This document shows, piece by piece, positions 1 through 19,683 of a stretch of 64,000 nucleotides of DNA. The DNA lies in NCBI GenBank assembly GCA_019828565.1, contig JAHDYR010000007.1, forward strand, positions 605,333 to 669,332, written 5' to 3'. The DNA is from Carpediemonas membranifera BICM (taxonomy: Eukaryota; Protista; Fornicata). The translations under genes were made by a program, and so were the position numbers. How positions within the stretch are numbered: position 1 is the first letter of the stretch; every line of letters starts with the position of its first letter. The notes beneath the pieces were generated by a model that did not search any database, had not been told where the DNA came from, and saw nothing but the letters and a program-made list of their open reading frames with translations.

Positions 1-32
1 TATGGAGCACATGTATTATACGCCTGCCTTCT

Positions 33-3000
33 TCACGAGAGCAGAACCTCGGATAAGGTGCACCCATTGGTGATTGCATATTTATAGGTTAATTTTGACC
101 TCGGAGTTTTCTGCGCAAACTCGGTTTGTCTGCGAGGTACTCCCTCAAACGCCCTAAGTTCATCAAGGTCGGCGTTGAAGCGTTCCCATGTCGCCTCTTC
201 CTCGAGGTACCCCTCCCACAGCACATGTAGGTGAAGGACGCCGTCCTCAAATTTGTGAGAGTCGATCGCTTCTACGACATATTCGTCAACTCTCTGGGCC
301 GCGAGCCGTGTCAACTCAGCCCTTGTCGCGTCAGACTCAAAATGTCTTAGACGCTCGGCATGGACCTTAGCCACTACGCCTGTCGTCAGGTTCTCCACGT
401 AGTAAACGTTCGGCGACTCTGCGGGTCCCTGGCACCACATTGGCCCAGCCAGCTTCGTGCGGCGGCCGACAGTGGTCGTTACCAGCACTGGCTTGTTCGA
501 TAGGGCCACGTGTGATGCTTCTGATGGTGTTTGTTGTTGCAGCGCCTGGTCTTGGATGACTCTCTGTAGTTCCAGGCTGCGCTTGAAGGCCTCAAATGGC
601 ATCTTGCTCTCATTGCTCATGATCTCTTCTGGTCTTACGACCACGTCTTGGTTATAAAGCAAATTCAGTGGCGATAGGCCTGTCCTGGCCACAGATGTTG
701 AATTAATGATGTACTGAGCCAAAGGTAGTAGCCGCGTCCATCTAAACTCCTGCAGATCGAGCATTAGCGTCTCTAGATGCCTCTTAACCTCGGCGTTGAC
801 CCTCTCAACTATTCCTTGAGAACCCGGGCGGTAAGGCGTGCCGACGTGATGTTGCGACCCGAGCCTTTCCATTAGAGCGTCAATCAGCTTATTTCTATAC
901 TGGCTGCCCCCGTCGCTGTGAATCACCCGGGGAATTCCGTAGTGACCCACCCAGGCCAAAATTGCCCCTGCCGCGGCATCTGCGTCCGTCGAACGCGTGG
1001 GGACCAGCATAGTTAGCTTCGAGTACGTGTCAATTAACACGCACACGTACCGCAGACCCTCGCTCTCCGCGATGGGTCCGATCGTGTCTACCTGCACGAC
1101 ATCAAACGGCAGGCGACCTGCCGTACGGTGGCGCAAGTGTTGGACGGGCTTGGCCGTCTTGCGCGTGACCTGGCACACAGGACACGACTGGACAAACTCC
1201 TCTGCGTCCTTATACATGCCCCTCCACCTCCTACCGAGCGATATAAGCTTGTTCACCGTCGCTCTCGCTCCGAGATGGCCGTGTATGCCTCCGTGAACCT
1301 CGGAGATCCACGTGGCGTGATCATCTGCCTCGACTGTTGCACCGCATAGGCGAGATAGCGCGTCGGCAGCACCGTTCGCTTGACCAGGCACGTGTACGAC
1401 GGAATAGTCGAACCTTTCCAGTGCCATGCGCCATCTAGTTACCTTAGCGTTCGTGCTTGTCGCGATATACAGCAAATTCCGGTGGTCCGTTCTCACAGTA
1501 AACGGCCTGCCTACTAGGAACCGCTCGGCCTTGATCATAGCGTAATAAATGCCGAAGCCTTCCTTTTCATAGGTGCTCCACCTTCTTTGAACATCCGATA
1601 GTGTCTTGGAATAGAAAGCAATCGGACGCTCCTCCCCGTCTTCGATCTGTAACAAAACTGCCCCGACAGCGTAGTCACTCGCGTCGGTTTGTAGGATTAA
1701 TTGGCAGCCACGCTTGGGGTGACTTAACATGTTGTTCTGAGATAGGGTCGCTTTGATGTCGACTAGGGCATCTTGTTGGGCCTTCTCCCAACGGAACTCT
1801 TCCTTGGCTCTCGTCAGAGCCAGGACTGGCTCCATCATATTGCCGTAGTTCGGAATCATATGGCTAAAATAGTTCGTGAACCCGAGTAAGGTTCTGACTC
1901 CGGCAACATCTCTCGGGCTGGTTAGGCGGTCGATGCCTTCTAGGCGGTCAGGCGCGATTCGCTTGCCGTCGCCATTCACAAGCCAGCCCAAGTATTCTAT
2001 TTCTGTCAGTCCGAACTCAGACTTGGACAGATTCAGCTTCAACTTGGCCGAGTTGAGCTTTCTCAAGACATAGTCCAGATTGTCGAGGTACTCTCTCTGG
2101 TTCTCTCCGAATATTACTATGTCGTCTACATATGCGAGACACCGTGTCCACAGTGCATCGCCCAGTACGGATTCGAGGGTCTTCTGACAGAAGGCTGCGG
2201 CCCCTTTGAGTCCGAAAGCTAAACGCTTGTACTGGTACTTACGCTTCCCAACTGTAAACGCCGTTAGTCTGCGTGAGCTCTTGGTCATAGGAATCTGGTG
2301 AAAGGCCTTGCTTAGGTCCAGCTTAGCGAAGAGGGTCTTACCCTCTAGTCTTGCTACCAGATCGTCAATGATAGGGAGGTCGTGATCGAAGTCCTCCGTC
2401 GCGTCGTTAAGGCGCCGAAAGTCCAAGCAGAGCCTGCGGGTGCGATCGCGCTTCCATACAAGCACCGTAGGATTGTTATAGTTGCTCGTAGACTCCTCAA
2501 TCACATTCAGATCCTCCAGCTGCGCCGTCTGGCGCTGCATATCCTCTCTTTCTTCAGCCGAGACGTGGTATGGAGGGATGTTGATAACCTTCTGGTTTGT
2601 AAGAACCAGTTCGAAGGGTGGAACGTCTGCTGGCTGCGAAATGTCGCCGAGAACGTCTTTGTACTTGCTTAGGATGGTATTAGTCTCTTCAGGGAAGCTA
2701 CGTATCTGTAGTTCGTGCTCCGCTTCAGCAAGGGTAAATAACGTCTCGTCTACTTCATCTTCATCAAGCTCCGCGAAGTGTGGCTCTCCAGAATTCTCCA
2801 TCGTCGGCTTGACGATCGTGATTAGCCCCAACGCACTTAATGTCGATATTCCCATAACTAATGTCGGCTTCAGCCCGGGTAGCACCCGCAAATTGAGAGC
2901 AGCTTGAGTTCTCCGCCCAGTAGATGGCAACACTCCAAAATCTGCACTCAACTTAACAATGCCGGGTGAGTTGTAAATCGTACCAGTGGCCAGCTTAACC

Positions 3001-3161
3001 TTAGCATGGTCGGGCTCGACGACTAGGCCGAGCTCTTTGACGAGGGATTGGGATATAAAGTCGGCAGAGGCCCCTGTGTCATAAAGGAACGCCAACACTC
3101 TCCCCCAGGATGCCCACCTCGCCAATGGGTCTGTTGTCGCGGTCCTCCGCGACCAAAGCAT
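33..3161 (-). CDS. pol: Pol polyprotein (aspartic protease, reverse transcriptase, RNase H, integrase, chromodomain)
   Basis: Protease LYDTGAS; RT RLCLDFRRLN, LDLSKAFHQ, YVDD; RNase H QTDASDYAVGAVL, TDHRNL; integrase H-x5-H...CPVCQ, SDGG, VERVN; chromodomain YVVEAI...VLWEGY...TWE. Probably continuous with gag across a 1-nt indel at 3102-3106. Confidence 0.95.
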   Translation of the reverse strand: MLWSRRTATTDPLARWASWGRVLAFLYDTGASADFISQSLVKELGLVVEPDHAKVKLATGTIYNSPGIVKLSADFGVLPSTGRRTQAALNLRVLPGLKPTLVMGISTLSALGLITIVKPTMENSGEPHFAELDEDEVDETLFTLAEAEHELQIRSFPEETNTILSKYKDVLGDISQPADVPPFELVLTNQKVINIPPYHVSAEEREDMQRQTAQLEDLNVIEESTSNYNNPTVLVWKRDRTRRLCLDFRRLNDATEDFDHDLPIIDDLVARLEGKTLFAKLDLSKAFHQIPMTKSSRRLTAFTVGKRKYQYKRLAFGLKGAAAFCQKTLESVLGDALWTRCLAYVDDIVIFGENQREYLDNLDYVLRKLNSAKLKLNLSKSEFGLTEIEYLGWLVNGDGKRIAPDRLEGIDRLTSPRDVAGVRTLLGFTNYFSHMIPNYGNMMEPVLALTRAKEEFRWEKAQQDALVDIKATLSQNNMLSHPKRGCQLILQTDASDYAVGAVLLQIEDGEERPIAFYSKTLSDVQRRWSTYEKEGFGIYYAMIKAERFLVGRPFTVRTDHRNLLYIATSTNAKVTRWRMALERFDYSVVHVPGQANGAADALSRLCGATVEADDHATWISEVHGGIHGHLGARATVNKLISLGRRWRGMYKDAEEFVQSCPVCQVTRKTAKPVQHLRHRTAGRLPFDVVQVDTIGPIAESEGLRYVCVLIDTYSKLTMLVPTRSTDADAAAGAILAWVGHYGIPRVIHSDGGSQYRNKLIDALMERLGSQHHVGTPYRPGSQGIVERVNAEVKRHLETLMLDLQEFRWTRLLPLAQYIINSTSVARTGLSPLNLLYNQDVVVRPEEIMSNESKMPFEAFKRSLELQRVIQDQALQQQTPSEASHVALSNKPVLVTTTVGRRTKLAGPMWCQGPAESPNVYYVENLTTGVVAKVHAERLRHFESDATRAELTRLAAQRVDEYVVEAIDSHKFEDGVLHLHVLWEGYLEEEATWERFNADLDELRAFEGVPRRQTEFAQKTPRSKLTYKYAITNGCTLSEVLLS

Positions 3162-3903
3162 TAAGATGAACGTACTTCTGCCCCTTTACTCCCTCACGCT
3201 CGTCACGCTTACGCTTCCAACACGTATCAGCAGTGTGACCCTTGCGCTGGCAGTACTCACAAGCAGTTTCCGACTTCTCCTTAGCCTTAGTCATCGTTGC
3301 GGAGGTCGCACTCTCTCGCTCCACACGCTGGTGCTCTCTGCGAGCCTTCTCTGCTTCCGTGGCCTGGATGAATGCCTCGGCGATCGTCTCGTCAAGCGTC
3401 TTCGCCTTCTTAGCATTCACTCGCTCCTTCAAGCGACCGTACCTGATGCCAGCAACAAAGGCATCGACGATGAGCTTCTCCGTGGGCCGAACCTTACAAC
3501 AGTTACGAACTTGACGCTTATACGCCAGGGCATACGCGGCCATGTTGTCAATGAGGTTACCCTCAGAGCCGCACGACAAGTCCTTAAAGCGATCTAAAGC
3601 GTCCACCTCATCCAGAGGCTGCATCAGCTCGTCTACCATGGTGATAAAGGCCTCGTTGAGTTCAGAGGTATCGGCCGGCTCTTCATCCGGCGTTTCATTA
3701 GCGTACTCAAGGAACCCCTCAAGTTCAGGGATTCGGATCTTAAGAACCTCTAGGACCTGCGTTTCGATTAGGTCAAAGGCAACGATCGGATCGGCTTCAC
3801 GGGCAGCATACTGCTCGTAGTCTTGACGGAAAGTATACCACGACTTGGTGGTGGCCTTTCGCAGGAACGGGGCGTTGTTGAGTTTTGTTTCAGGTAAATG
3901 CAT
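3079..3903 (-). CDS. gag: Gag protein with CCHC zinc knuckle
   Basis: ATG at 3903 (MHLPETK...); CEYCQRKGHTADTC knuckle; FVAGIR capsid-like motif; directly upstream of pol. Confidence 0.88.
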   Translation of the reverse strand: MHLPETKLNNAPFLRKATTKSWYTFRQDYEQYAAREADPIVAFDLIETQVLEVLKIRIPELEGFLEYANETPDEEPADTSELNEAFITMVDELMQPLDEVDALDRFKDLSCGSEGNLIDNMAAYALAYKRQVRNCCKVRPTEKLIVDAFVAGIRYGRLKERVNAKKAKTLDETIAEAFIQATEAEKARREHQRVERESATSATMTKAKEKSETACEYCQRKGHTADTCWKRKRDEREGVKGQKYVHLNALVAEDRDNRPIGEVGILGESVGVPL

Positions 3904-3914
3904 GCAGTAATTAC

Positions 3915-4180
3915 TGTGGTACCCAAACAATTGAGAGAGTGAAATTTAGAAGCAGGTTTGAGATCATTGACCAAATAAGACTGATCATTAAATGAGGTCG
4001 TCATGACAACTTGAACCGTTAGAATTTTTGCTGACGGTTGGGAGGCACGTTTGAGCTTGTGGACGGTTTGGGATCATGGGGGGAAGTGTCATGACGACCT
4101 CATTTAATGATCAGTCTTATTTGGTCAATGATCTCAAACCTGCTTCTAAATTTCACTCTCTCAATTGTTTGGGTACCACA
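3915..4180. repeat. 266-bp cassette with perfect 94-bp terminal inverted repeats (TGTGG...CCACA) and a 78-bp spacer; LTR-like or MITE-like
   Basis: 3915-4008 (tgtggtacccaaacaattgag...gtcgtcatgaca) is the exact reverse complement of 4087-4180. Confidence 0.95.
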
Positions 4181-5633
4181 CGGATCTGTCAGGCTACGCT
4201 CCGTGAAATTCTTCTTAGACCAGTACTTGGCCTTCACTGACTGGCAGAGGCCACGCTGCCACCTTTCGAAGTCGCCATCAACTCTGCCACCCAACTCAAT
4301 GGCTTGGAGACAATATGCAACGCAGTTGCCGTCACTCTTGACATGAATCGCGGTACAGCCAGCCGTGAGAGCCTCCGCGTTGATGCACGTCTGCACCGCG
4401 GCCTCAGAGGTGATGCGAGTCTGAGTCTCCGGCTCAGTCTGGATGCAGGCGTCGCATTTGGTCACGTCCTCCTCATGTGACTCACCCTTCCTCTCCTCTG
4501 TCACCATCTCCTCCTCGTCTGACTCCTCTGAGTTGCTATCGACATCAGCGATCTTCTGAGGGATTGTCATGAGGGCCTTGCGCTTCATGTGGATTGTGTC
4601 GCTCTTCCCCGTACGGCGGGGGGTACTCGTTCGTGCTTGGTGTGTGCCCGACTGGGGTAGGTCGCGGCGAAACGGCGCGGGTGTCGGGCTGGCACCCATG
4701 GAGATGTCAGCTGCGTACCCCACGTCTTGCAGCAGCCTCGTGACGGTCTCCTCCAGCTCGAGTACTCTCTTCTGCGCCTTGTGATGGAGCACTCGTGCCT
4801 CCATCGGAAGAGATGGGAGGTCTTTGTGAATCCAGTCCTTCATTTCGAGCAGCTTGGATACGCGAAGGTATCTGTCGAACTGAACGTCGACGTGGTTGTC
4901 CCCAGCAACCGAAGCTGACTCTCGAGAGGCGCGAATGCGAAGCTCGCCGTGCACCTCCTTCTGGACTCTATGCCACAGGACGTAGTTGCGAGCGTTATTG
5001 TCCTCCCACTCCTTGAGCTTCTGGGCGATCTTTCTCTCGCGCCGGCGCTTGATCGCGCGTTCTCTAATCTCATCGTCGGACTCGTTGTCAAAGTCCACCT
5101 CACTCTCACTGTCGCACAACTCAGAATCGTCGACGCCGCTCTCTTCACCACTGTCCACGCCACTCTCATCGTCGACGGGTTCTTTCTTAGCGCTCTCGGC
5201 TTTGCCCTTGCCCTTGTCCTTCTCCTCGGCGTCAATGGCCTCAATAATGGCCTTACGCGCCTTGCGCTTCTCCTGGCTATACACGATATCAGCCTGGTTG
5301 TCGTCAACCCACTTCGCCAGCGCGCCGAGCTTCTTGGAACTTCTTGGTCCGGCGAGTGCCATAAACTGCTTCTTCAACTTATCATGGAGCTCCTCCTTCT
5401 CGTCCTTCGTGAGGCGGAATTTCGTGGTGATATGGTTCAGGTTGATTCCTATATAAGCATTGCTATGACTACAAACGCTTCCTGATGACTAGATCGAGCA
5501 GTTTCCGTTCATCCAGCAAAACCGCGCGAAGGACAGCACATTTGGCATGATTGGTGGTTGCCTTGGTGTATGCAGCCAATATCGCATCGTACTGTTCCTT
5601 GCTAGCGCTCTCAATCCACTTTAGCAAGTCCAT
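4181..5633 (-). pseudogene. Charged/acidic protein with a C-terminal OTU-like cysteine protease start, truncated by the inverted-repeat cassette
   Basis: ORF 4100..5377 has AIHVKSDGNCVAYCL (OTU D-G-N-C motif) ~45 aa before reading into the inverted repeat at 4180. The frame is open upstream to ~5487 and may join the short ORF starting at ATG 5633 by a 1-nt shift. Confidence 0.55.
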
Positions 5634-6541: not shown

Positions 6542-6871
6542 GATATACGGATTTCAGACTTTCTGCCTGCACGACCTCAAATGTTGACTCCCCTCGGCAC
6601 CGAAAAGGCACCTATATCCATGAATACCCTCTACAGTGATGTATCCACCCGATAAATGGATTTCAAATTTGTCGGGTCTCATGATAAATGGATTTCAGAC
6701 TTTCGTACTGTTGGCCATCTGAGAATTTATGAACGACCTCTAGAATATTTTGAATGCAAGAACGTGCCTATGGCACTCTTTTTGTACCCCTGAACACGGT
6801 TTGACCACTGTTTTGGGCATTTGGAGAGATTCGAATTTTTGTGCATGACGAAAGTCTGAAATCCGTATATC
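6542..6871. promoter_or_regulatory. Four copies of a GATAwAyGGATTTCArAyTT motif (three direct, one inverted) immediately upstream of the recombinase-like ORF
   Basis: Copies at 6542-6563, 6651-6670, 6683-6704 and inverted at 6850-6871. 6542-6572 vs 6841-6871 form a 28/31 inverted repeat. The ATG follows at 6873. The regulatory role is inferred. Confidence 0.6.
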
Positions 6872-6872
6872 G

Positions 6873-8260
6873 ATGGAAGGAAGCCCGCAGGAGATGGAAA
6901 CAACCATGGAAGCTGTGAAGAATGCTTGGTTGTGCACCATCAGTAAGAAATCTTCCCGGAAAGCGGTCGCAAACAACCTTTCGCGGTTCGTTCAATTCGT
7001 ACAACGTGAGCGAGGGAGTACCGAGGACGAAGCGCTCTCCGTGATCCGGTCCGAGGAGGTTAGATCGCTTGTGCCCGGTTTTGCTGCATCATTGAGCAAG
7101 GCAACCGCTGCTGTCACTCTCAGTGCCGTCAACTCATTCCGAAACTCCGGCAGAGACAATGTCAAGCCGCTTGGGCAGTTTGAGCCTGTCGCATCGGAAG
7201 CTATTGTCCGACTAGTCTTCCCCTACAATGCGCTGGCTCTTATCATCAGCCACACAGGCATGACTGCCACATCAGCCCGCGATATTGATGTGAGCGAGCT
7301 CCAGATTCCCCCGGAACTCGCTGACTGGTTGCTATTCACCGGGGCACCATCCACGATGTCCGCTGTGATGCCTAGCACCTTCTCGCAGGCTCTCAAGTCG
7401 GTCGGGCTGAGTGTTAACCAGCTTCGCTATGCGCCCACTGTGCATGTCGATCTCAATCAGCTCAAGAAGCGGGTGATTGAGACACAGAGACGGACGGGCA
7501 GGCCCAGGGATCCGACCAAGGTTCGTAAGGTCATTAAGGACAAGCGCATCAGCCTGACCGATGAGCAGTTCAGGCGCCAGTTGGCGTCCAGTCACTTAAC
7601 GACCACGCGACGCCCAACGATCCTCGATCTCAACCCGGAGATCCGAAGCTCTGCCGACCTGGTGCCGCCGACGCTCGATGACTGGCTTTACAACAAGCTC
7701 AGGATTAGGATGGTCCAGCTCCACGACCAGCGTAAGCCCGAGGGGGACGACACGGGGGAGGGGAGTCTGACGATGAGGCGCTGTTTGACGAGACAGCTGG
7801 CGAGGCAGAGATGCCGGAGACCGCGGTGGAGGGCGAGTCTGACGATGAGGCCGGGTTGGAGATGCTGGAAGGAGAGTGGGAGGATGAGGAGAGTTCAGAC
7901 AGCGATGCCGAGGATAGCCTCGTCGACAACCTGTCATTTGTTCAGTCACAACAGGTTGAGTGTGATATGTCTGAGAGAGATACCGATGAGGGTGTCCGTA
8001 GCGGGACCAATGGAAGTGGGCTCGCTCCGCTCTATGACTCTATGAAGGCCAGGGAGCCCAGCAGACGCATTCGCCTTCGCCGCTATCACGAGAGCGAGTC
8101 AGACTTCGGCAGCAGCAGCGACAGCGACGACGGGATGCCGAAGCTGCCCGTTGAGGCCTTTGAGCACATCCGTGATGCCGGGATGACAACTGTGAGGCTG
8201 ACGAGGGCCGAGTATGACGACCTGATGGAGAAGAGAGAGCAGGAAAAGCACCAGAAGTAA
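6873..8260 (+). CDS. Degenerate tyrosine-recombinase-like (Crypton/integrase-fold) protein with acidic tail; 1-nt frameshift at ~7760
   Basis: Core-binding-like helices (SRKAVANNLSRFVQFV...LSKATAAVTLSAVNSF), box I-like ALIISHTGMTATSARDIDVSEL and box II-like ALKSVGLSVNQLRY. Adding one G at 7760-7763 restores EGESDDE (repeated at ~7829) and joins ORF 7811..8260. Confidence 0.5.
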
Positions 8261-9261
8261 ATGGCCGTCGGTTGTCCATATGAGCATGTACGAGTCAACT
8301 ACCTGCCAACTGTATCTCCAGCCATAAGTCCAGAGCAGGCCACCTATACGGCAGCCCGAGCCGATCCACATTTGTGGATTCAGCTAGACCGGGCATGCCA
8401 CAACACTGCATCTAGTCCCATCTAGTCCCAATTCACGCGTGTATATACGCTACAGAGGACCGTATCTGGCCTTAGGAAACGGCTATGGGGTGCAGGTGGT
8501 TAATCCTTAAAGTGCGTTGCATCGATGCAACAAGCAACTACCTCAAACGTGCGAGCTACCATCGATTTCTTGCCATCAACACGACACATTGACGTCAGAT
8601 AACTATGCGGTCAGCAATGAGCACACTAAACAACATCACTGTGCCAAAATACATCTTTGGACATCAGGCATGCCACAGAACATGTAAGCAACATCAAACC
8701 CGCCTAATTCCAGCTCATTTAGTCAATAAACACATCATCACATTCCAATATCTCCTCATGATGCGCCAGATGGCAAGTGACTCTGGCCTGCTCCTCCGGT
8801 GAATGACAATGCAGTAGTCTGGAAGGATGTTGAGAGAGCCCCAAAGGCCAGGCGAGTAAGCGCTACACAACCGCTTCACCAGCCCTCCAAGGCAGCGTTC
8901 TGGACCTGCGTCATCTCCGGCGAACTGGGATGATCCAAAGTAACGGTGTAGTGTTCTTTCTGGCAGCTAATTGTGCATAAGCGAATGCTTTGTGGTCATT
9001 TATTGCTCTTTGGCGCAGCAACGCCCACAATTCTTTGGGATACTGTTCTTTTGGTGTTGATGTTGTTATTGATGTTGATTTCTCCGCTTTTCGCTGCTTT
9101 GCGTTGTAATTGCAATGTTTTCTAGTACATTCCGCGCATCAGATCATTGCTACAACCTGAACTCGCCATTTTGGCGTTGCAATGAAACTATCCCCTAAAG
9201 TGCACACTAAATGAAATCAGATCAAGCAGACAAGACAGCAACGTACATTTACGAGTGAGGA

Positions 9262-9800
9262 CGCTGGAGAGAGCAGAGCGCCTGGGAAACAGCGCTGGGG
9301 ACAGGAGCCCCGGAGGATAGAGCCCGGGGGAGAAGAGCGCTGGGGACAGGAGCCCCGGAGGATAGAGCCCGGGGGAGAAGAGCGCTGGGGACAGGAGCCC
9401 CGGAGGATAGAGCCCGGGGGAGAAGAGCGCTGGGGACAGGAGCCCCGGAGGATAGAGCCCGGGGGAGAAGAGCCCGGGAGAGAGAAGCCCGGGAGAGCGC
9501 CCGGGAGAGAGGAGCCCGGGAGAGAGGAGCCCAGGGAGAGGAGCCCGGGGGAGAAGAGCGCGGGAGAGAGGAGCCCGGGAGAGCGCCCGGGAGAGAGGAG
9601 CCCGGGAGAGAGAAGCCTGGGAGAGCGCCCGGGGGAGAAGAGCCCGGGAGAGAGGAGCCCGGGAGAGCGCCCGGGAGAGAGGAGCCCGGGAGAGAGAAGC
9701 CTGGGAGAGCGCCCGGGGGAGAAGAGCGCGGGAGAGAGAAGCCCGGGAGAGCGCCCGGGAGAGAGGAGCCCGGGAGAGAGAAGCCTGGGAGAGCGCCCGG
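9262..9800 (+). repeat. Purine/G-rich tandem array of ~13-15-bp units (agcccgggagagagg family), including four perfect 45-bp higher-order units
   Basis: agcgctggggacaggagccccggaggatagagcccgggggagaag x4 at 9291-9470, then variant units to ~9800. Confidence 0.97.
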
Positions 9801-10153
9801 GGCAATTCAGGGCCCCGAAAACGCCAGCACCAGCGCAAGTAAGCTATTTTATTGCAAACCGCTCTACTTGCGCTGGTATTTCAGCGTTTTCGCGGCCCTT
9901 TGCCCATCATTCGTCGTCTGAATTTTTTCGTGCAGAATTCAGACGAGTGTCGCCTGGCAGAGGCTGAGCAGCGGAGCTTAGTCCCTGTGGCACCACTCGT
10001 CTGGCCCAGCTCCCGGGCATGCTCACGAAAATACAGGTGCAGATTTGGGAGCAGAATGATCGACGAACCCCGAAAACGCCATAACAGGCACCAGTGAGCG
10101 CATCTTCGTTGATGAAGCTCATTGGTGCTGGTAATATGGCGTTTTCGGGGTTC
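9800..10153 (+). other. Cluster of three long hairpins between the two arrays
   Basis: Hairpins 9800-9905, 9940-10003 (alternative 9914-9946) and 10065-10153 (19-bp perfect basal stem). Hairpins 1 and 3 share CCCCGAAAACGCCA. Confidence 0.8.
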
Positions 10154-10165
10154 AAATACTGTACT

Positions 10166-10757
10166 CCTCATCCCTGGCGCCCTCATCTTGGCTCCCTCAT
10201 CCTGGCGCCTCATCCCTGGCGCCTCATCCCTGGCGCCCTCATCTTGGCTCCCTCATCCTGGCGCCCTCATCCCTGGCGCCTCATCCCTGGCGCCTCATCC
10301 TGGCTCCCTCATCCTGGCGCCTCATCCCTGGCGTCTCATCCCTGGCGCCTCATCCCTGGCGCCCTCATCTTGGCTCCCTCATCCTGGCGCCTCATCCCTG
10401 GCGCCTCATCCCTGGCGCCTCATCCCTGGCGCCCTCATCTTGGCTCCCTCATCCTGGCGCCTCATCCCTGGCGCCTCATCCCTGGCGCCCTCATCCCTGG
10501 CGCCTCATCCCTGGCGCCTCATCCCTGGCGCCTCATCCCTGGCGCCCTCATCCCTGGCGTCTCATCCCTGGCGCCTCATCCCTGGCGCCCTCATCTTGGC
10601 TCCCTCATCCTGGCGCCTCATCCCTGGCGCCTCATCCTGGCTCCCTCATCCTGGCGCCTCATTCCTGGCGCCTCATCCCTGGCGTCTCATCCCTGGCGCC
10701 TCATCCTGGCTCCCTCATCCTGGCGCCTCATCCCTGGCGCCGTCATCACTGGCGCCC
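10166..10757 (+). repeat. Pyrimidine/C-rich tandem array of 13-15-bp units (cctcatccctggcg family)
   Basis: About 40 units of cctcatccctggcg with variants ccctcatcttggct and cctcatcctggcg. Confidence 0.97.
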
Positions 10758-11893
10758 ACACAGCACCCCTACGCCAGCGCCATCAATCCCCAACGGCACA
10801 GTAAACAGAAAATGCTCTTTATGCTCTTACACGATGGCGTTTGGAGACGAAAACGAACACCCATGGTACCTGCAGGTAAGGTAAGTTAAGGTAATTTCCG
10901 GTGATCGCGTTCGTTGCAATTAATCATCATACCAGACAGCGCTCCTGGTATCAACAGGTGCATCATGCCCTGCGTATTCTAGCAGCACGCGGTCTCTCCG
11001 CATCACTACGTTGTTTGCTTGTCTGATATTAACAGCAGAATGACACCAGAAAATTTATCAAACATGATGTGGACGGGGAGTGCTTCAATATTTGTCTCTT
11101 GATACGGTTCATGTTTGCTAGTTGCCTCACTGAGAACGTAGGATTGCCTTCATCAGGTATATGGACGCAACATCAAGGTATTCCTTCGCGATATCGTCTG
11201 CAAAGAGGTAGTATTCCTCTATTTGAACCAAATCTTTGATTCTTATGCGCATCGTCTCTAATTCAGTGACGAATTCGTGTCTTCTCATGTTTGTGTACTT
11301 TATGCACAAACATGAACCTCCATTGATTTGTGGCAGTGAAGCAATTCTGGCACTATTAAGCGCCACGCTACGAGTGAGTATGGCATGTTTCAACACCTAG
11401 CCGTCGTCACAGTTTAGTCAGTTTTGACTCGAACCGAACCAGTGCCTATAACACCATCAATACTGAAGTTCAGATCCTTTTGAAGTGATAAACTAGTAGA
11501 ATAGAAGGATGAATAACACTGTGCTCAGTTTTAGCTCCGTTGGACATGAAACATATTTTTCTATCGATTTGCGTTTGCTTGCGAAAGTTTGTGCTATTTT
11601 CTCCAGATAAAGGCGTGCGCAAGGAAATCTGGAGGCTAGCGCTGTTATAATGAATGTTAAACTGTTACGTAACGGTGTCGGTATCCAACGCGCATCCCCC
11701 GTTCTTGAGCAGAAGCAAACTTTTTTGGCAGTATTTCCCGAAAACCTCAACTTTGAGCAAGAATATTTTTTTGGGGGAGCTGTCACAGACTGAGAGAGAG
11801 TTGGAGCTGGCTTAAGCACACCTCGGGCAAGCCTCTGTTAGTTTTTGGTCGAGCTCTGCTGAAAAGTGAGTGAGTTCATGAGAGCAGTACGTA

Positions 11894-12604
11894 TCAACGT
11901 TCCTTGGGCCCAGTATTAGTTGCATATTGCTTTACATCCCATGGCAAGGCGTCGCTAAATTGTTTGAACGCGTTTAGTTTTTCTTGCAAATGCCATTTTT
12001 TCTGGCATTCTGGAACCAATTCTGGAACTATTTGTTCCAGAAAAGGTACCAGAATTGACTGCATGTCTTCGCCGTCCGGGCCGGTCAGGTTGCCAGGCCG
12101 TGCGACTGTCTCGACGTTTGCGATGTCGTGGTCGTCGGTCAGCTGGGTGAAGAAGTCGCGGGCCTTCTTGCCGCAGTCAGTCAGTATCTGGGGATGTTGA
12201 GCTTCAAGGCACTCCCGGGTCATTGCTGTCAGGGTGGGGTCCTTGTGCTTAGCTGCACACTCGCTACAGGCGGCGAACGTGGCTTTTCTTATGGTCTTCT
12301 GTACCTCCTCTACCCAGATGGCGGTGAGGTTGTCGGTCTTCGTTGTACGGGCTCGTGCCGCAGTACTGGCAGAGCTTGTGTTCGCCGCGCGGCGAGCATC
12401 GGAATCGGACAGAACGGTTCGTTGTAGGTCCTCGAAAGTGTCAAAAAGAGTGGTTGGGCGCCACTGGGCGCGAAGTTTTTCTGTTGTCTCGGGGGACAAT
12501 GCCCTAAAGAACGAAATTGGATTCTTCTCGTGGGGCATCGCCGAGAGGTACTCCTGGAGTGCTCTCTCGACGGCGAACGGGGTGTCAATTGTAAGAGTCT
12601 TCAT
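11894..12604 (-). CDS. Hypothetical protein (236 aa)
   Basis: ATG-initiated ORF with protein-like composition; no recognised motif; start overlaps the upstream stop (ATGA). Confidence 0.5.
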   Translation of the reverse strand: MKTLTIDTPFAVERALQEYLSAMPHEKNPISFFRALSPETTEKLRAQWRPTTLFDTFEDLQRTVLSDSDARRAANTSSASTAARARTTKTDNLTAIWVEEVQKTIRKATFAACSECAAKHKDPTLTAMTRECLEAQHPQILTDCGKKARDFFTQLTDDHDIANVETVARPGNLTGPDGEDMQSILVPFLEQIVPELVPECQKKWHLQEKLNAFKQFSDALPWDVKQYATNTGPKER

Positions 12605-13086
12605 TTGAATCGGCAGTATCGATACTGTGCCGTGCTAGGGCCCAGAAATATGATAAAGACTGTTTTACGAATTCCGCAGGTTAAGGGCACAGCGGCAACC
12701 TTGTCGACCTTGGTGCGCACGAAGAGGTGGGGCGTGGTGGCCCCGCGGTCGCTCGCCGGGTTGATGGCAGCAGTGGCGGCCTCGTAGACGTTGAGGAGGG
12801 TGTAGGCCATGTCGGGCTCGTTGTATTGGCAGACGTCGCCCTCGCTGATGTCGTTGCTGTCGATCTGGAAGTACTCGATGCGGACATCATTAGTCGAAGG
12901 ATTGGAGCGAGCGGCGAGTATTTCAGCGCTCTTGTGGTCATTGGCGATGCTCAAAAAGCGCATGTTGGCAAAAATCGGGAAGCCGGACGTGTTGACGAGG
13001 TCGATTCCAATCTCTGCCTTGCGATAGCACAATGCAGCGCCGATGATGGCTACAAGAAGAAGCAATGCGAATGGATTGCGGTTCAT
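12601..13086 (-). CDS. Hypothetical secreted protein (161 aa)
   Basis: N-terminal signal peptide MNRNPFALLLLVAIIGAALC; a few Cys; beta-rich pattern. Confidence 0.6.
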   Translation of the reverse strand: MNRNPFALLLLVAIIGAALCYRKAEIGIDLVNTSGFPIFANMRFLSIANDHKSAEILAARSNPSTNDVRIEYFQIDSNDISEGDVCQYNEPDMAYTLLNVYEAATAAINPASDRGATTPHLFVRTKVDKVAAVPLTCGIRKTVFIIFLGPSTAQYRYCRFK

Positions 13087-13443
13087 AACCGTTGTTTCTG
13101 TTCTGCCAACATCGTGACGCTGAAGATGCTTGCCGAATCAAGAATGTGACAGATCAGAATGTGACGCGGTCCAAGTCCAAGCTGGGCAACGCTAGCTTGG
13201 CCAATCCCCTCGATTCTCATCACCGCTACAGCTCTGTGAAGATTCTTCATCAAGTGTCTTTACTCCAGGGCCATTCTGGTCTGGGCCTGGTCGAACACGG
13301 TCTGAATGAGACTGATAGTCAGGCTGACGTCCTTCACGCCCGTGGAGCGTCCATTTTAGAGACCAGGCAGTAAGACTGACACGACATCAGCCGCCGATTG
13401 CTTTATAGCTCGAATATAAACATTTATTTATAATAACGTTCAG

Positions 13444-16400
13444 TTATCTAACAAGGTACGACTGCAGCAGTGTCAGGGACCCGCTGTAGCTCATCAGGTG
13501 CCGGAAGACGGCCCTCAGCCCGAGGGTGTTCACGGCGATGACGAAGAGCGAGGCGATGACGGTACACCCAACGAGGACGACCTCGTTGAAGCTCACAAGG
13601 AGGTCCAGTCGACTGAAGCGGTTGTTAAACATGTCACTGAGTCCGTTTGCAACGTTGTACGTCGTCTTTAGGACCGGCATGAGAACGCCGCTGCGGACAA
13701 CACTCGACGCCGAGGTCGAGGTCACGGTGAATGCGGTCAGCGCAGAGACGTAGCGGGTGACGGTGGTCGTCAGGCCAAGGACCCAGGCGCCGGTGAAAAC
13801 GTAGTCGAGGAAGCCCGCGTTGAACACGTCATAGATGGCGTCGTTGAGCGCGTCGGTCTCCAGATCAAGCATCGCGGGGTGGACGCTGGCCGGGTACTCG
13901 TAGCTGAGGGCGGCGCGGGTGCCGGACTTCAGCAGGAGGGAGTCGGTCTTGGCCGTGTCAGAGACGAAGACGTAGACCTCGTAGATGACGCCGAGCATGC
14001 CGACGATAGCCATGGCGCAAAGCACAGTCACGACCGTGACGGAGAGCAGCAGGCTCACGCCCAACGCGAAATCAGGGCGCAGGGTGCGGTTGAGCACCTG
14101 CTTCTGACGATACTTGGAGTCGTGTCGCCGAGTCACTCGCGTGAAGGCAGTTGTGGTAAATGTTGGCAGGACAACGAAGGTGACGACGACAAGCACAGGG
14201 ATGAGGCACGCGGCTGTGGTGTAGTCCGCGTACATTAGCGCCGTGTGGGCTCGTTCTCTCGTGGCGTGGATGCCGTCCCGGTAGTCTACGTAGATCGCGG
14301 TGCACTTGGTGACCACAGCATCGTAGTCAGCGTATGTGACGGGGTCCGTGAGGCAAAGGGACTCGGCCATGGCCTGCTTCTCGGCGTCAGACCGGGCAAG
14401 GTCATACGTCTCGTTCGTAAAGCGGCCTGGGGCGGAGGCCCGCTCGGTCGGGTCGTTCGAGTTCCAGGTGTAGGTGTCGATGACCGCGTTCTCGATCGTG
14501 TGGCCATTGACACTGGCCGCGAGTCTCGTGGCGATGTACATGTCCTGGACAAACCTGGCGTGTGAGATCTTGCCCATAGCAAAGGCCTCAGTCCCTGTGG
14601 CGTCTGCCCCAAGAGTGTAGAGCTTGGCAGTGGTGGCCAGCATCTTGGTGACCGCGGCGTCGAGGTCAGCGAGCACACCCTCGTCAACTGTGTAGACGTA
14701 TTTCTGGACGAGGTGCATGATGACCTGGTCCATATCGATTACCCCCTCGAGCACGGAGCTCAGCTCGGCCGCGTCTGCGGCTAGGGTATCCGGGTCGAGG
14801 ACTGCGGTCACATACCAGCGGACCCCCAGCCCGGTGACAATGGTGGCGGTGGCGAAGGCAAGGCAGAGCAGTGCGACAATGGAGACACGCCGGGCCGTAC
14901 CAGTCTTGATCGTGCTGGGCCTGAACCCGAACGTTGCCACGGGTGCGAGGGAGATGAGGATGACAAGCGCCACGACGACGCTGATGACCGCACGTGCAGT
15001 GAAACTGGTGGCGATGAGGACTTCGATCGAGTCCACAATCATGTAGGACATGTCGTACAGGTAACCCGAGATCACCATGAACAATGTCTCGACCTTGTCG
15101 TCGAACAGGATGGCCTGGGCGATGGCGAGCTGGTCTGCCGCGGCGAGTGTGGTGGTGTCGGAGGTCTTGTTGGTGTACCAGACCGGCCGGGAGTACTCCT
15201 CGACGTCCTGGGCGTGGTGGGTCTCGCCCGTGTAGTTCCAGTCGACGCTGAGGCCCGTGGTGATGTCGCTGGTGAACCCGTGGCCGTACGCCGCGATGCT
15301 GACGGCGACGTCCATGTAGTACAAGAGCTGCTGCTTGAGGGTCTGCACCGTGACCATCTCATCGCTCATCCACATCTCGGGGGCATCGCTATAGTAGTCG
15401 AAGTTCCTCTGACGCACGGCCGGGTCATTACGGCGGGCCACGTATGCCCGGAGTCGGTCAGTCGCACCGGCGATGGCGAACCCGGCGGTCTGTATCATGT
15501 CGTACCCTTCCGTGCCTGAGCACTGAATGGGTGTCATGTCCAAGAGGTGGTGAATCTCGTGCTCGTTCTCAGTGGCGCTCTGCTGGCTGACAATCGAGTA
15601 TATCGAGTACGACGCGAGCACCGCCATGGCCACGAGGATGCCTGCCACGCCCAACACGGACCAGACGCCCTGGATGACACCGAGCCCGCTGGCCTGTTTG
15701 CGCTTCCTCCCCCTGGCCGGGCGGTGGGCGAGCTTCTTGACGATGTTGCCGACCGTTTGTATGGGGCTGTCGCCGATGATATCGCCCTCCTCCGCATCCG
15801 AGCCATCCATTGAGTCGACGAAGAGCACTGACACCTCGCTCCCGCTGCTCTCGTCCGCGATCATCTCGAACGCGGACCTTGGCTCGGGCTGGGGGATCTC
15901 ATTGGGGCTCTCCAGGAAGGAGATATGGCCCCTGACACCCGGCCGGGTCCTGGGCTTCTCATCGGCCGTCGAGTCGCTGGGCGAGTCGTCGGAGAACTCC
16001 GCGGCGTGAGATTGGGCCAGCTGGGTCGCCCCGAGCTGCTTCTTGGTCAGGTCGTGCTTGTCACCGTCGTCGAAGGTTGCGAGGTTGCCGTCGCTGAGGT
16101 CTTCTTGGAGGTCCTGGTCGAAGTCGAGCATGTTGATGCCGCGGAACTTCGACTTGGCCATGCCGACCAGCCGCATCTGACGACGGACCTGAGCCCTTGA
16201 GACGGAGAGGCAGTTGGTCAGCGAGATGTCACATGAGACTACCTCCGTCGAGAAGTTGCGGAAGATGATCCAGAAGATGAGTACGACCGTCATCGCCAGC
16301 TGGACCACCACGAGCAGCCCTTGGAAGACGACGCAAACGTACAGGAGCCCGAGGATCGATGACCGCTGCAGCTCTTGTACCAGGTCCACAATCTCCGCGA

Positions 16401-19400
16401 AGGAGTCAAAGTTACCGGCAACAGCGGCCTGGGCGTGCGAGTAGACGGTAGACCTCTCCACTAACGTGATGTCTGCTGGGCGATCGGTCGTTGACTCAGA
16501 AATAACCCGCATCTCATGAGCCAGCCCAGCAGCAATAGCCCAGGTCTTCCGGGCGGCGCGGGCGGGGATGACGGGGACCTCGTCGGGCTCGTAGAAGTAG
16601 TAGTACTCGTTGCTGCCATGGTCCATGTCGATCAGGAAGTCGTGGTGGGACTCGATCGCCTCAGCTGCAGCGGAGATGGACGTCGCGAGGGGGTGTTCGA
16701 GGTCGAGTGCGTCGAGGCGCGTGTCATTGAGGTACAGGAGGGACGAGAAGAAAGAGCCCTCCCCCACGGCGAAGCTGACGTTGTGGAGGTCCTTGATGAC
16801 GGTAATGTGGTCTCGCATCAGCTCTGACACGGCCAGCAGGGCACCGCCTGTGAGGACGGTGAGGGCCACATTCACGGCGGCCACGGCGAGGAGGATCCGG
16901 AAAAACGTGGTCGACGAGTTCCGCTCAAAGTAGCTCTGACCTGAAGAGCCCGTGCTCGACCCGCTGAAGCTGGAGCCAGTGCTGTGGCTCTCGGACGAGT
17001 TGCTCTTGGTGTCGTCGTCGACGGTCTCGGTCCGCAGCTGCTGGGCGCGGGTGTGGTCCTGCATGACGGAGTCGAGGAACAGGATGTACCACTCCCGGAC
17101 GGTTGGGTTGTCCGGGTAGCGGCGGAAGAGGCGCGTGTAGAGCAGGTTGGCCTGGGTGGCCGAGATGCCGATGCTCCTGGCGTGCTTGATGATGAGCGGC
17201 AGGTCAGGGTGGCGGCGAAGGAGCAGGGGCCAGAACTTGCCGACGAGGAAGAGCGTTCGGAGGTGGAAAGAGCGGGCCTGCGTCAGCTTGCTCTGGATCT
17301 CGAGGAACGACGCCGCGTTGTCCTTGCCGCCGAGTGTGAAGACGTGCTGCATCTGCTCGATGTAGCGGTGCATCGAGAACTCGAACATGCCATGGTCGAC
17401 GCGTGTGTGGGCGAAGCACTCCTCCGCGATGTTCCGCAGCATAGCGTGGGACGTACTGATCGAGGCGGGCCCCATGTTGGCGACGTTGAGCAGTGCGAGA
17501 CGAAGGGGGGGCGTGATCTCCTTGGTGTACGCCACACACGCTCGTCGGAGGACCATGTTCGCACCGGTGAAGAGGTTGGCCTCCATCGTGGAAGAGATGC
17601 CGCCGCGGCCAAACAGACGGCGGTCGTGCCATATGAATGGACGGGTGCCGAGCTCGAGGCCGGTCACAGAGATGTCCGCCATCGTCGGCAGTTTAAGGCT
17701 CGTGACGGAAATGGCGGCGACGTGCTTGATGTTGGCAGCCCGCTTCCCTGGCTTCAGTGCGTTTCTGAGGAGGGCGAGCTTCTTCGTAGCGGCATCGCCC
17801 GTCTCCGAGAACATGATGGCGAACACATGCTCCTCGGCCATCCTCAGGCGGACGTGGAGTAGGGCCATTGGGACAAGGGCCGCGGGGAGGGACAGGAGGG
17901 CAAGGAGGGCAAGGGCAGCGGCGGTGGCAGTGCCTGGGGTGACGCCCGTGAAGTAGGTGACCACGGACCACAGTGCTCCCAGATGAAGCACGAGAGACGC
18001 GACCGCAGCCAGCCCGAGCATGGCGGCGACAAAGGCCTTTTGACGACGGCCGATGGGCCAGAGCGTCGACACAACGATGAATGCGAGTGCCACGACCAGG
18101 CTGGCGAGACTCATGGCGACGGCGAAGAGGCGGGCCGCGACTCGCATCGAGTCGGAGAGCTCGGTGTCGTCGAACTCGACGGCACCTATGGCGGCACCAA
18201 CGAAGGCGACCGAGATGTGGACTGAGAGGAGAAGCAGCTCGCGGAGGTGGTTTACGCTAGAAAGCGTTGGTGCGAACGCGAAAGAAACGGCGTGCAGGCC
18301 GAGGGGGGCGAGAGCGGCGAGCATCATGCCCAGGGCGAGCATGTCGGGCAGAAGGTTGGTGAACATCACGGTGAACGCGTTGTCCGTGTCAATGCCGTAT
18401 ACCAGGTGGATGGGGGCACGTCCTGCTAGGAACCCCAGGGGCAGGAAGACGTGTGTGACGAGAACGGTGGTTGAGAGCACCCCAGCGTACCGGCCAAGCA
18501 CACGTCCAATGGTAAACATCCGTTCGTGCGTGTTATTGAGGGCCAGGAGTGCTGTGACAGGGCCTGCGTATACAAAGGCTAAAACTGCGAGTGGAACTGT
18601 TACACCGCCCCAGGCGGGCACGGCGGACGTCAGGCTGGGGGCGACGGGGGCCATTAGGACGTCTCTCACGACCTGGGCTGTGTCGCTCATCGGTGTGGCG
18701 ACGGAGAAGGCTGCGAGAAAAGGCAAGAGGAGGCCGCACGCGAGGGCGACGACACTGCTGAGGTAAACCCAGCCGGGCACGACGCGGTCGGTCGGCTTCC
18801 ACCAGAGGGCATATATGATGGCAGGCAGGCCCGTGTTCATGATGTCGCCGATAGTGTTGCGGCCGGTGTTCGCCTTGTCGTCTGAGCTGATCGCCTGAAG
18901 CTGCGCAGCACGACGGATGGCGTAGTTCTTGCTGGCCTGCTGCGAGAGGAATGTTCCAACGATATGGAGGGACTCTGCGATCGTCTGAACCGCGGCCATG
19001 GTCTTGCGACGGGACTTACGGAAGGCCTTGACGAAATCAACGGGGTCGTGGCCGATGTCCTTCGCGAGGTTCACCATGATCTTGGCGTCTTCGACAGAGG
19101 GCACGCCTGTGACAATGCCACCGATGAGTATGGAGGCAATGGCCACGCCGTCGAGCTGGACCGCGCTACCGCCATCCGTGAGCGTTCCAGAGTGGCAGAG
19201 ACCCACGTACGCATGGTCAAACGACAGGGAGCCGATCTGCTGGTCTGAGCTGAAGCAGCGGCGGTTTCCTTCCTCTGAGCCGCGGATGATAGAACACATC
19301 CCGCCAAGACGGGAAGGCTGGCCCAACGGTTGGCCTGACGTGTCAGTAAGAACGGCACTGCAGTTGGCGTACTCCGTGAACTTGTCCAGGAGGATTTGGA

Positions 19401-19683
19401 TCGCGTCCATATCGAACAGTTCGGGCATTGCCTTGGACGTCGTGGAGAAATCCTTGTGATCGGGGTCAAACGTGAAGAACGGTGCCAGTTTTTGGATCTG
19501 ATTTTGCATTACAGCCGGTTGTTCCACATAGATGAAGACATCGTCCAGCGCTTTGAGGAGGGAGGCATAACGAACCTTCAAATGCTCGGGAAAATCTGAC
19601 ACGTTGCCACGAATCGTGGGAACTTCAATCTCATCCCCATGCGGAGCGGTGGAGAGCCGTAAAGCTTCCTCGATGTCCTCCAT
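13444..19683 (-). CDS. 2079-aa polytopic membrane sensor: N-terminal PocR domain, multi-TM block, TmcB/TmcC-like helical domain, repeated extracellular modules
   Basis: PocR-type Cys pattern MCSIIRGSEEGNRRCFSSD...LCHSGTLTD (C130, C143, C163); many hydrophobic segments; KFWPLL...YTRLFRRYPDNPTVREWYILFLDSVMQD is TmcB-like. Confidence 0.8.
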   Translation of the reverse strand: MEDIEEALRLSTAPHGDEIEVPTIRGNVSDFPEHLKVRYASLLKALDDVFIYVEQPAVMQNQIQKLAPFFTFDPDHKDFSTTSKAMPELFDMDAIQILLDKFTEYANCSAVLTDTSGQPLGQPSRLGGMCSIIRGSEEGNRRCFSSDQQIGSLSFDHAYVGLCHSGTLTDGGSAVQLDGVAIASILIGGIVTGVPSVEDAKIMVNLAKDIGHDPVDFVKAFRKSRRKTMAAVQTIAESLHIVGTFLSQQASKNYAIRRAAQLQAISSDDKANTGRNTIGDIMNTGLPAIIYALWWKPTDRVVPGWVYLSSVVALACGLLLPFLAAFSVATPMSDTAQVVRDVLMAPVAPSLTSAVPAWGGVTVPLAVLAFVYAGPVTALLALNNTHERMFTIGRVLGRYAGVLSTTVLVTHVFLPLGFLAGRAPIHLVYGIDTDNAFTVMFTNLLPDMLALGMMLAALAPLGLHAVSFAFAPTLSSVNHLRELLLLSVHISVAFVGAAIGAVEFDDTELSDSMRVAARLFAVAMSLASLVVALAFIVVSTLWPIGRRQKAFVAAMLGLAAVASLVLHLGALWSVVTYFTGVTPGTATAAALALLALLSLPAALVPMALLHVRLRMAEEHVFAIMFSETGDAATKKLALLRNALKPGKRAANIKHVAAISVTSLKLPTMADISVTGLELGTRPFIWHDRRLFGRGGISSTMEANLFTGANMVLRRACVAYTKEITPPLRLALLNVANMGPASISTSHAMLRNIAEECFAHTRVDHGMFEFSMHRYIEQMQHVFTLGGKDNAASFLEIQSKLTQARSFHLRTLFLVGKFWPLLLRRHPDLPLIIKHARSIGISATQANLLYTRLFRRYPDNPTVREWYILFLDSVMQDHTRAQQLRTETVDDDTKSNSSESHSTGSSFSGSSTGSSGQSYFERNSSTTFFRILLAVAAVNVALTVLTGGALLAVSELMRDHITVIKDLHNVSFAVGEGSFFSSLLYLNDTRLDALDLEHPLATSISAAAEAIESHHDFLIDMDHGSNEYYYFYEPDEVPVIPARAARKTWAIAAGLAHEMRVISESTTDRPADITLVERSTVYSHAQAAVAGNFDSFAEIVDLVQELQRSSILGLLYVCVVFQGLLVVVQLAMTVVLIFWIIFRNFSTEVVSCDISLTNCLSVSRAQVRRQMRLVGMAKSKFRGINMLDFDQDLQEDLSDGNLATFDDGDKHDLTKKQLGATQLAQSHAAEFSDDSPSDSTADEKPRTRPGVRGHISFLESPNEIPQPEPRSAFEMIADESSGSEVSVLFVDSMDGSDAEEGDIIGDSPIQTVGNIVKKLAHRPARGRKRKQASGLGVIQGVWSVLGVAGILVAMAVLASYSIYSIVSQQSATENEHEIHHLLDMTPIQCSGTEGYDMIQTAGFAIAGATDRLRAYVARRNDPAVRQRNFDYYSDAPEMWMSDEMVTVQTLKQQLLYYMDVAVSIAAYGHGFTSDITTGLSVDWNYTGETHHAQDVEEYSRPVWYTNKTSDTTTLAAADQLAIAQAILFDDKVETLFMVISGYLYDMSYMIVDSIEVLIATSFTARAVISVVVALVILISLAPVATFGFRPSTIKTGTARRVSIVALLCLAFATATIVTGLGVRWYVTAVLDPDTLAADAAELSSVLEGVIDMDQVIMHLVQKYVYTVDEGVLADLDAAVTKMLATTAKLYTLGADATGTEAFAMGKISHARFVQDMYIATRLAASVNGHTIENAVIDTYTWNSNDPTERASAPGRFTNETYDLARSDAEKQAMAESLCLTDPVTYADYDAVVTKCTAIYVDYRDGIHATRERAHTALMYADYTTAACLIPVLVVVTFVVLPTFTTTAFTRVTRRHDSKYRQKQVLNRTLRPDFALGVSLLLSVTVVTVLCAMAIVGMLGVIYEVYVFVSDTAKTDSLLLKSGTRAALSYEYPASVHPAMLDLETDALNDAIYDVFNAGFLDYVFTGAWVLGLTTTVTRYVSALTAFTVTSTSASSVVRSGVLMPVLKTTYNVANGLSDMFNNRFSRLDLLVSFNEVVLVGCTVIASLFVIAVNTLGLRAVFRHLMSYSGSLTLLQSYLVR

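Follow-up and report, generated by a model that had tools for sequence, protein, structure and literature searches.

The cassette at 9262-10757 of the 64,000-nucleotide stretch of Carpediemonas membranifera DNA analysed here (the window) lies, as a non-coding module, inside non-autonomous cut-and-paste transposons of 11-15 kb, and the family that carries it is recently active, inserting in the C. membranifera genome. Its carriers bear a recombinase-like and an OTU-like gene as cargo, and none of the cassette-bearing elements encodes a transposase. The window belongs to contig JAHDYR010000007.1, to which a neighbouring gene assigns it, so that the host is indeed the Carpediemonas that the preliminary description had considered. 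Our overall reading, which we hold to be probably correct, is of a transposon-cargo cassette of inverted-duplication origin that would have begun as a transcription-end module and is now a passenger.

The cassette is symmetric, with a left array (9262-9802), a three-hairpin core (9803-10165) and a right array (10166-10757). Tandem-repeat (TRF), skew, hairpin and folding analyses agree on this anatomy, which the preliminary description had proposed together with the view, also borne out, that the locus is organised and not random satellite. The left array is a VNTR of 12-17 bp units around GCCCGGGAGAG, with higher-order repeats of 45 and 84 bp; it measures 541 bp, is G-rich on the forward strand (50% G, 75% purine, GC skew +0.38) and contains CCCGGG 22 times. 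The right VNTR array, 592 bp of 13-15 bp units reading GGCGCCAGGGATGA on the reverse strand, is G-rich on that strand (GC skew -0.41) and contains GGCGCC 31 times. TRF calls the two at 9305-9802 (periods 15, 42 and 84) and 10166-10756 (period 14, 42 copies), and finds no third array of like size or score in the 64-kb window. Across the 363-bp core (53% GC, skew -0.02) the strand skew flips, just as had been claimed, and the G-rich strands of both arrays are directed toward the core. Local alignment of the left array with the reverse complement of the right one scores 276, as against 14 on the same strand, and the unit-level inverted match has p = 0.01-0.035 against shuffled units. Hence, the reported likeness of the arrays in inversion stands for the arrays overall but not for the unit quoted in its support, AGCGCTGGGGACAGG (p = 0.6), while an inverted similarity reported outside them is marginal (9227-9245 vs 11007-11025, p ~0.04).

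On the left, a non-coding flank (8394-9261, forward strand) travels with the array in every case, and its segments 8394-8810 and 8851-9261 are duplicated within elements; on the right, all arrays share a tail (10758-10930, forward strand), after which the two carrier types, A and B, part ways. The open reading frames across the arrays (9188-9838, 10094-10804 and 10122-10889) were discarded as genes because the units of 13, 14 and 15 bp shift the frame and copy numbers vary freely. The observed/expected CpG ratio is ~1.0, which leaves no methylation footprint. Canonical G4 motifs (G3 N1-7) are absent from both arrays, with just long-loop or two-tetrad motifs present, and the mean G4Hunter scores are 0.53 and 0.68; the G4-prone character previously considered for the locus thus comes down to a weak potential.

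All three hairpins of the core are long. Hairpin 1 (9809-9899; arms 9809-9824 and 9884-9899) is an imperfect palindrome whose inner stem is perfect over 13 bp, hairpin 2 (9940-10003; arms 9940-9954 and 9989-10003) lies at the symmetry centre of the cassette, and hairpin 3 (10065-10153; arms 10065-10083 and 10135-10153) has a 19-bp perfect outer stem. Hairpins 1 and 3 are homologous (alignment p<0.001) and have CCCCGAAAACGCCA in common; a 14-mer common to them occurs three times in the core and at no other mismatch-free site in the window. In the DNA fold, the spacers beside hairpin 2 pair with one another. Folding of the core is exceptionally stable, with z = -11.4 as DNA and -11.9 as RNA, and none of 100 shuffles does as well. 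Conservation of the core is not above that of the flanks (93.7-99.5% vs 98.5-98.9% identity), and two-sided changes affect one of 134 pairs in its stems; hairpin 2 shows a compensatory change, A9941T/T10002A, in the allele of L009 and the right-hand cassette of L007 (n=1). Several allelic stem changes destroy pairs, and ~10 give G.T on the forward (sense) strand as against ~2 that give A.C (p 0.04-0.09, from ~12 non-independent events), whereas the flanks are free of such a strand bias (38 vs 33). All six core alleles have the better fold on the forward strand, the two strands of the window copy being roughly equal. This bias is suggestive of a structure formed on the forward strand, which is the sense strand of the upstream gene.

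Our sample consists of ten loci fetched around paralogues of the recombinase-like gene plus the window, a design that solo cassettes would escape. Thus sampled, the cassette occurs in seven of the 11 loci, on six contigs, as nine full and four partial copies, with one full copy each in the window, L002, L003, L006 and L009 and two each in L007 and L011; the core, earlier called unique, is hence present in nine full copies in this sample. Two or more cassette copies are found in five of the seven carriers, and contig 33 (224 kb) carries three or more full cassettes, divided between L002 and L011, which lie 136 kb apart. The flanks and neighbouring genes are alike in every copy (96-99% identity), the segments 8851-9261 and 10758-10930 being constant in all full copies. 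The preliminary description had named dispersal of copies flanked by the same ORFs as the sign of a mobile element, and this is what the 11 sampled loci show. Full copies have right arrays of 20, 38, 38, 42, 45, 72, 121 and 149 units and the left array in the other copies spans ~0.2-1.0 kb, lengths to which long-read error may contribute; partial copies keep 3-11 right units. Array length differs up to seven-fold among near-identical elements. The expectation that arrays and core stay together holds only in part, since right units occur without a left array in the four partial copies and without the core in L008, and L010 has a left-array remnant without the core. The cassette is not present in the transposase-bearing loci L004, L005 and L008, in a 4.3-kb element described below, or in the type B element of L010. 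Searches of phage and plasmid collections gave no match to the core, and the hairpin-3 pattern was not found in viral and metagenome contigs.

The carriers fall into two types by their terminal inverted repeats (TIRs), which both start with CATG: a 22-bp TIR starting CATGCTGT in type A (L002, L003 and L006) and a 56-bp TIR starting CATGCAGT in type B (L007, L009, L010, L011 and the window). In the window, the type B right arm (10931-12065, forward strand), 98-99% identical to those of L007, L009 and L011, terminates in the 56-bp TIR (12010-12065, reverse strand), with CATG at 12062-12065. The earlier suggestion that the cassette might be the ends or origin of a large DNA element is thus right in placing it inside a mobile element but not in making it the element's end, as the CATG TIR is 1.3 kb away at 12065. 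The target (12066-12604, reverse strand) is the 5' part of a Ty3 gag-like ORF (11894-12604, from an exhaustive protein search), for which L003 provides the empty site. The duplications generated at the target are 2 bp long—AT, TC, GC and AC in the carriers and GA in the 4.3-kb element—and are present in five of six complete elements, with empty sites confirming three (GC, AC and GA); the flanks of L002 are mismatched (GT/CT). All identifiable targets of carrier insertions are other transposons, namely Ty3 elements, once a transposase gene and once a sister element (window 12065; L003, L006, L007, L009 and L011). Directly upstream of the target gag lies an unannotated 161-aa ORF (12601-13086) that is 99% identical to L003 DNA and has no family match, and the region 13444-19683 encodes a host membrane protein of 2079 aa that combines a PocR sensory domain, a mostly bacterial type, at its N-terminus with a TmcB-type TPR region.

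The left arm of the window's carrier is hidden by a Ty3/gypsy chromodomain retrotransposon (1-4180, reverse strand) inserted into it outside the cassette. This chromovirus has a candidate 266-bp LTR (TG..CA) at 3915-4180, the ends of which form a perfect 94-bp inverted repeat, and a second copy of it is absent from the fetched loci. The gag ATG lies ~12 nt past the candidate LTR, there is no obvious tRNA primer site, and the element is possibly self-priming. The short subterminal repeats of the carrier family are separate from, and unrelated to, the arrays. Long imperfect hairpins with arms of 31-52 bp near the element ends are a general family trait (L003 4436-4548 and 15164-15230; L004 19165-19299; L008 17853-17970; L005 17866-18001), and those of L004 and L008 look homologous though their transposases are just 25-28% identical. 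In L004 (2155-6843 vs 11818-13989) and L008 (1-6720 vs 10778-12874), DNA from downstream of the divergent gene pair recurs on both sides of that pair in inverted orientation and amplified in tandem, in units of 670 and 1096 bp, the amplified units of L008 terminating at the short G-rich array. Strong internal tandem and inverted duplications are also seen in cassette-free loci (L004, L008 and L010). The literature that we searched holds no published description of the family.

The likely mobiliser, and the best candidate for an autonomous partner, is a 4,273-bp element nested in L011 (5385-9657), with a 76-bp CATACTGT TIR, a DDE-type ORF and no cassette. Its GA duplication is confirmed by the empty site in the window, and its ORF is 99.6% identical to P0035, a protein from L004. 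From the similar ends and identical duplication length, we infer that the DDE protein would move both type A and type B elements. Given that the cassette is absent from this element and from the type B element of L010, it is not needed for transposition. In related loci, the transposase is found in L004 (912 aa) and L008 (815 aa) and as broken copies in L005 and L006. These DDE-type proteins have invariant aspartates (D351 and D430), a PPxMHxSH motif and a conserved EExFE, and a secondary structure order of β-β-β-α-β followed by a helical insertion is predicted with low confidence (model pLDDT 39). Foldseek with this model, Pfam and the PDB gave no match, and homologue searches with the DDE-type protein, over up to 8000 candidates, returned itself alone among the matches listed, a weak blank in that the L008 paralogue was also missed. 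The CMCT clade unites EnSpm/CACTA, Mirage, Chapaev, Transib, Plavaka and ESTA and is defined by 5'-CA..TG-3' TIR ends, a 2-5 bp target duplication and a DDE transposase with an RNase H fold (PMC12730594). The 22-, 56- and 76-bp TIRs (CATGCTGT, CATGCAGT and CATACTGT) have CA..TG ends and the duplication is 2 bp; of the clade's motifs C(2)C and H(3-4)H, the former is reduced to one cysteine in P0035 and a serine in L006 and L008, and PPxMHxSH has the spacing H(2)H. Because both motifs are missing and there is no database match, we name the family CMCT-like and do not file it as a member.

The recombinase-like gene (6873-8260, forward strand; frameshifted near 7750 in the window copy) resembles, by eye only, a catalytically dead tyrosine recombinase. 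No fewer than 24 paralogues of it are known, exclusively from C. membranifera, and a single contig has such genes at as many as four sites. Its protein has no Pfam or PHROG match, and its Foldseek matches to Xer/IntI are not significant (E 0.57-2.5; AlphaFold model, pLDDT 48). The R-H-R-Y catalytic tetrad is lacking, with TGMT/TGWE at box I, QLRY/MLRF at box II, and the first Arg, the His and the Tyr not recognisable. Upstream of the gene (6542-6871) are three copies (+,+,-) of a ~22-bp motif with a ATTTCAGA core, which comes in two versions that track the recombinase-like N-terminal alleles (~40% identical) in nine of nine loci (also L004/L005/L009 9650-10020); these motifs are likely to be autoregulatory sites of the recombinase-like protein. 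An invertible promoter between the repeats is ruled out, as all copies are collinear. The OTU-like gene (4181-5440, reverse strand), recognised by eye from a DGxC motif like that of OTU proteases, has its 3' end cut by the Ty3 insertion; upstream of it, a 23-bp inverted repeat (5641-5663/5877-5899) with an extra internal copy is conserved across loci. Protein-kinase-like and SET-domain ORFs in or next to family members (L005 11399-12695; L010 11434-12473; L004 1544-2212) suggest Pack-type gene capture.

As to how the cassette arose, we think it quite likely that a module made of a G-rich motif and a hairpin was duplicated in inversion long ago and that the arrays were then amplified independently, because these resemble each other in inverted orientation, hairpin 1 is paralogous to hairpin 3, the spacers around hairpin 2 pair and L008 has unamplified seeds of both arrays. 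These seeds are four right-type units (11789-11850) and a left-type run (12885-12990) that occupy equivalent positions ~430 bp past the stop codon of the recombinase-like gene and are preceded by homologous lead-in sequences (p<0.001). The ancestral module would have been a short run of G-rich motifs and a ~90-bp hairpin downstream of the recombinase-like gene; its duplication in inversion would give the order array-hairpin, central hairpin, hairpin-array, and the two motif runs would then have diverged and been amplified separately by slippage or unequal exchange beside the hairpins. A diverged solo hairpin 1 is found in L005 (2528-2593), and the breakpoints of partial copies lie inside hairpin 1, at hairpin 2 or within an array. 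That the cassette might itself be a mobile unit of the Foldback or MITE kind was rejected, as it has no termini, target duplication or variable flanks of its own.

For function, we tentatively prefer a transcription-end module turned unstable passenger, a reading suggested by the position, the G-rich sense strand and the fold-back. The module would have begun as a transcription-end signal consisting of a G-rich sense strand followed by a fold-back, and the inverted pair could halt transcripts from either side; the cassette would now be a dispensable, rearrangement-prone passenger, copied with each move of the element. Against a pure passenger is the presence of two or more cassette copies in five of seven carriers, which is not required of a passenger. 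A scan for bacterial promoters and terminators stayed at chance level. The main rival, which we regard as rather unlikely, draws on analogy with VANC and TnpA: the arrays may consist of multiplied binding sites at which an accessory protein encoded by the transposon would enhance transposition or expression of the non-autonomous copies. A related motif does occur in both arrays, inverted and in non-coding DNA, short seeds are present in a transposase-bearing element (L008), the family has accessory genes, and VANC targets likewise build up as fast-evolving tandem repeats (PMC5735166). However, the likelier sites of the recombinase-like protein are the three upstream motifs that co-vary with its N-terminal allele in nine of nine loci, the short subterminal repeats of the elements are a separate set with no relation to the arrays, the array motif is missing from L004 and from the 4.3-kb element, and the CpG ratio leaves no methylation footprint to counteract.

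Origins of herpesviruses and baculoviruses are known to combine a repeat array with a dyad, and the cassette recalls this layout. A selfish, ORC-independent replication start of the transposon, by which the element would replicate early or over-replicate locally, is nonetheless doubtful. Converging transcription would here lead to R-loops on the G-rich strands and to primed synthesis in the fold-back core, which accords with the G-rich strands of both arrays pointing into the core and with the frequent presence of more than one cassette in an element, the order then being a permuted B-A-genes-A-B. It would also fit the host, since C. membranifera is without ORC/Cdc6 and an RNA:DNA-hybrid-driven replication mechanism has been proposed for it (PMC8516963). 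Yet the G4 scores are weak, the 53% GC core offers no AT-rich unwinding element and is more variable than the flanks (93.7-99.5% vs 98.5-98.9%), and equally strong internal duplications exist in the cassette-free L004, L008 and L010. As the host-wide origin that had been proposed, the cassette fares worse still, the tens of copies at most that we estimate for the 24-Mb genome being too few. A core that is a structured-RNA gene, either a ribozyme or a small-RNA precursor, is improbable: its strong folding as RNA (z -11.9), the G.U-preserving bias on the forward strand and the one compensatory change are set against two-sided change in one of 134 pairs, nearly equal folding of both strands in the window copy and the lack of any Rfam family at threshold. 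Nothing reached the Rfam threshold in the whole window, weak miRNA and CPEB3 matches having been rejected; for the latter, an HDV-like ribozyme (18 bits vs a cut-off of 35), the catalytic C (J4/2) is missing and the P1 pairs are broken. Joined hairpin telomeres with a protelomerase were likewise dismissed, as the element in fact ends in the CATG TIRs and the required catalytic residues are absent, and so was a CRESS/Rep origin, as the loop of hairpin 1 resembles the nonamer loosely and no locus has a Rep.

Least probable is a host centromere or partition site, perhaps bound by the dead recombinase-like protein in analogy to Ndc10. C. membranifera is without Ndc80 and most kinetochore parts (PMC8516963), Ndc10 descends from a Crypton recombinase and is without the catalytic site (PMC3212892), and the carriers are surrounded by nests of transposons, poor in genes, that include chromodomain Ty3 elements; indeed, such nests as a whole could be centromeric. 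But one centromere per chromosome, as formerly envisaged, is contradicted by the at least three full cassettes at the two contig 33 sites (L002 and L011) 136 kb apart on 224 kb and by the two full cassettes each of L007 and L011. Moreover, the insertions that contain the copies are young and still have their target duplications intact, and recombinase-like genes occupy up to four sites per contig.

What appeared to be a centromere or origin candidate thus moves into the mobilome, which is relevant to the search for non-canonical Carpediemonas origins, and exposes an active DNA transposon family with recombinase-like and OTU-like cargo that inserts into other transposons. Elements that are nearly identical but differ in whether they have two cassettes, one, a partial one or none, and in arrays of 3 to 149 units, amount to a built-in controlled experiment, and R-loop, nascent-strand or transcript-end datasets could test cassette function directly. 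Were the origin reading true, early or excess replication would be an advantage for non-autonomous transposons, and a eukaryote lacking ORC/Cdc6 would have mobile origins, sometimes two per element.

Among known systems, repeat-plus-dyad viral origins such as EBV oriP and baculovirus hr, and also G-rich origin elements, come to mind. The cassette resembles EBV oriP and hr in its layout of array and palindrome, with G-rich strands toward the core, but it has no initiator gene or AT-rich element, its G4 potential is weak and it is dispensable in relatives. Foldback elements (FB, Galileo and SoFT) have inverted tandem-repeat arms around a central unique loop and are rearrangement hotspots. The cassette likewise has such arms around a central loop and is rearrangement-prone; in contrast to them, its arms are only distantly related, and it travels as part of a larger element, between flanks that do not vary, instead of having its own termini and duplication. 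With the CMCT clade, the carrier family shares CA..TG termini, the 2-bp duplication, short subterminal repeats that occur in either orientation and large non-autonomous, cargo-bearing derivatives, and its putative DDE-type ORF has a predicted long helical insertion like that of the clade. The family differs in that its termini are CATG/CATA and not CACTA/CAC (the closest being CATCA of PlavakaB), in being without C(2)C and in the H(2)H histidines, and no Pfam, PDB or protein-database homologue was found outside C. membranifera. A tyrosine-recombinase-like gene that travels in a TIR element, itself probably mobilised by a DDE transposase, is reminiscent of MarCry-1_FO and of Crypton-derived dead recombinases (DUF3504, Ndc10; PMC3212892), even if the homology in the carriers is by eye with non-significant Foldseek matches and unrecognisable first Arg, His and Tyr. 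Finally, unlike VANDAL/VANC (Mutator-like, Arabidopsis; PMC5735166) and Spm/TnpA, the C. membranifera arrays give no sign of CpG methylation and flank a hairpin core in inversion, and the transposase class differs from that of VANDAL; in all these systems, a large DNA transposon combines accessory genes with internal tandem arrays of non-coding motifs that evolve fast.
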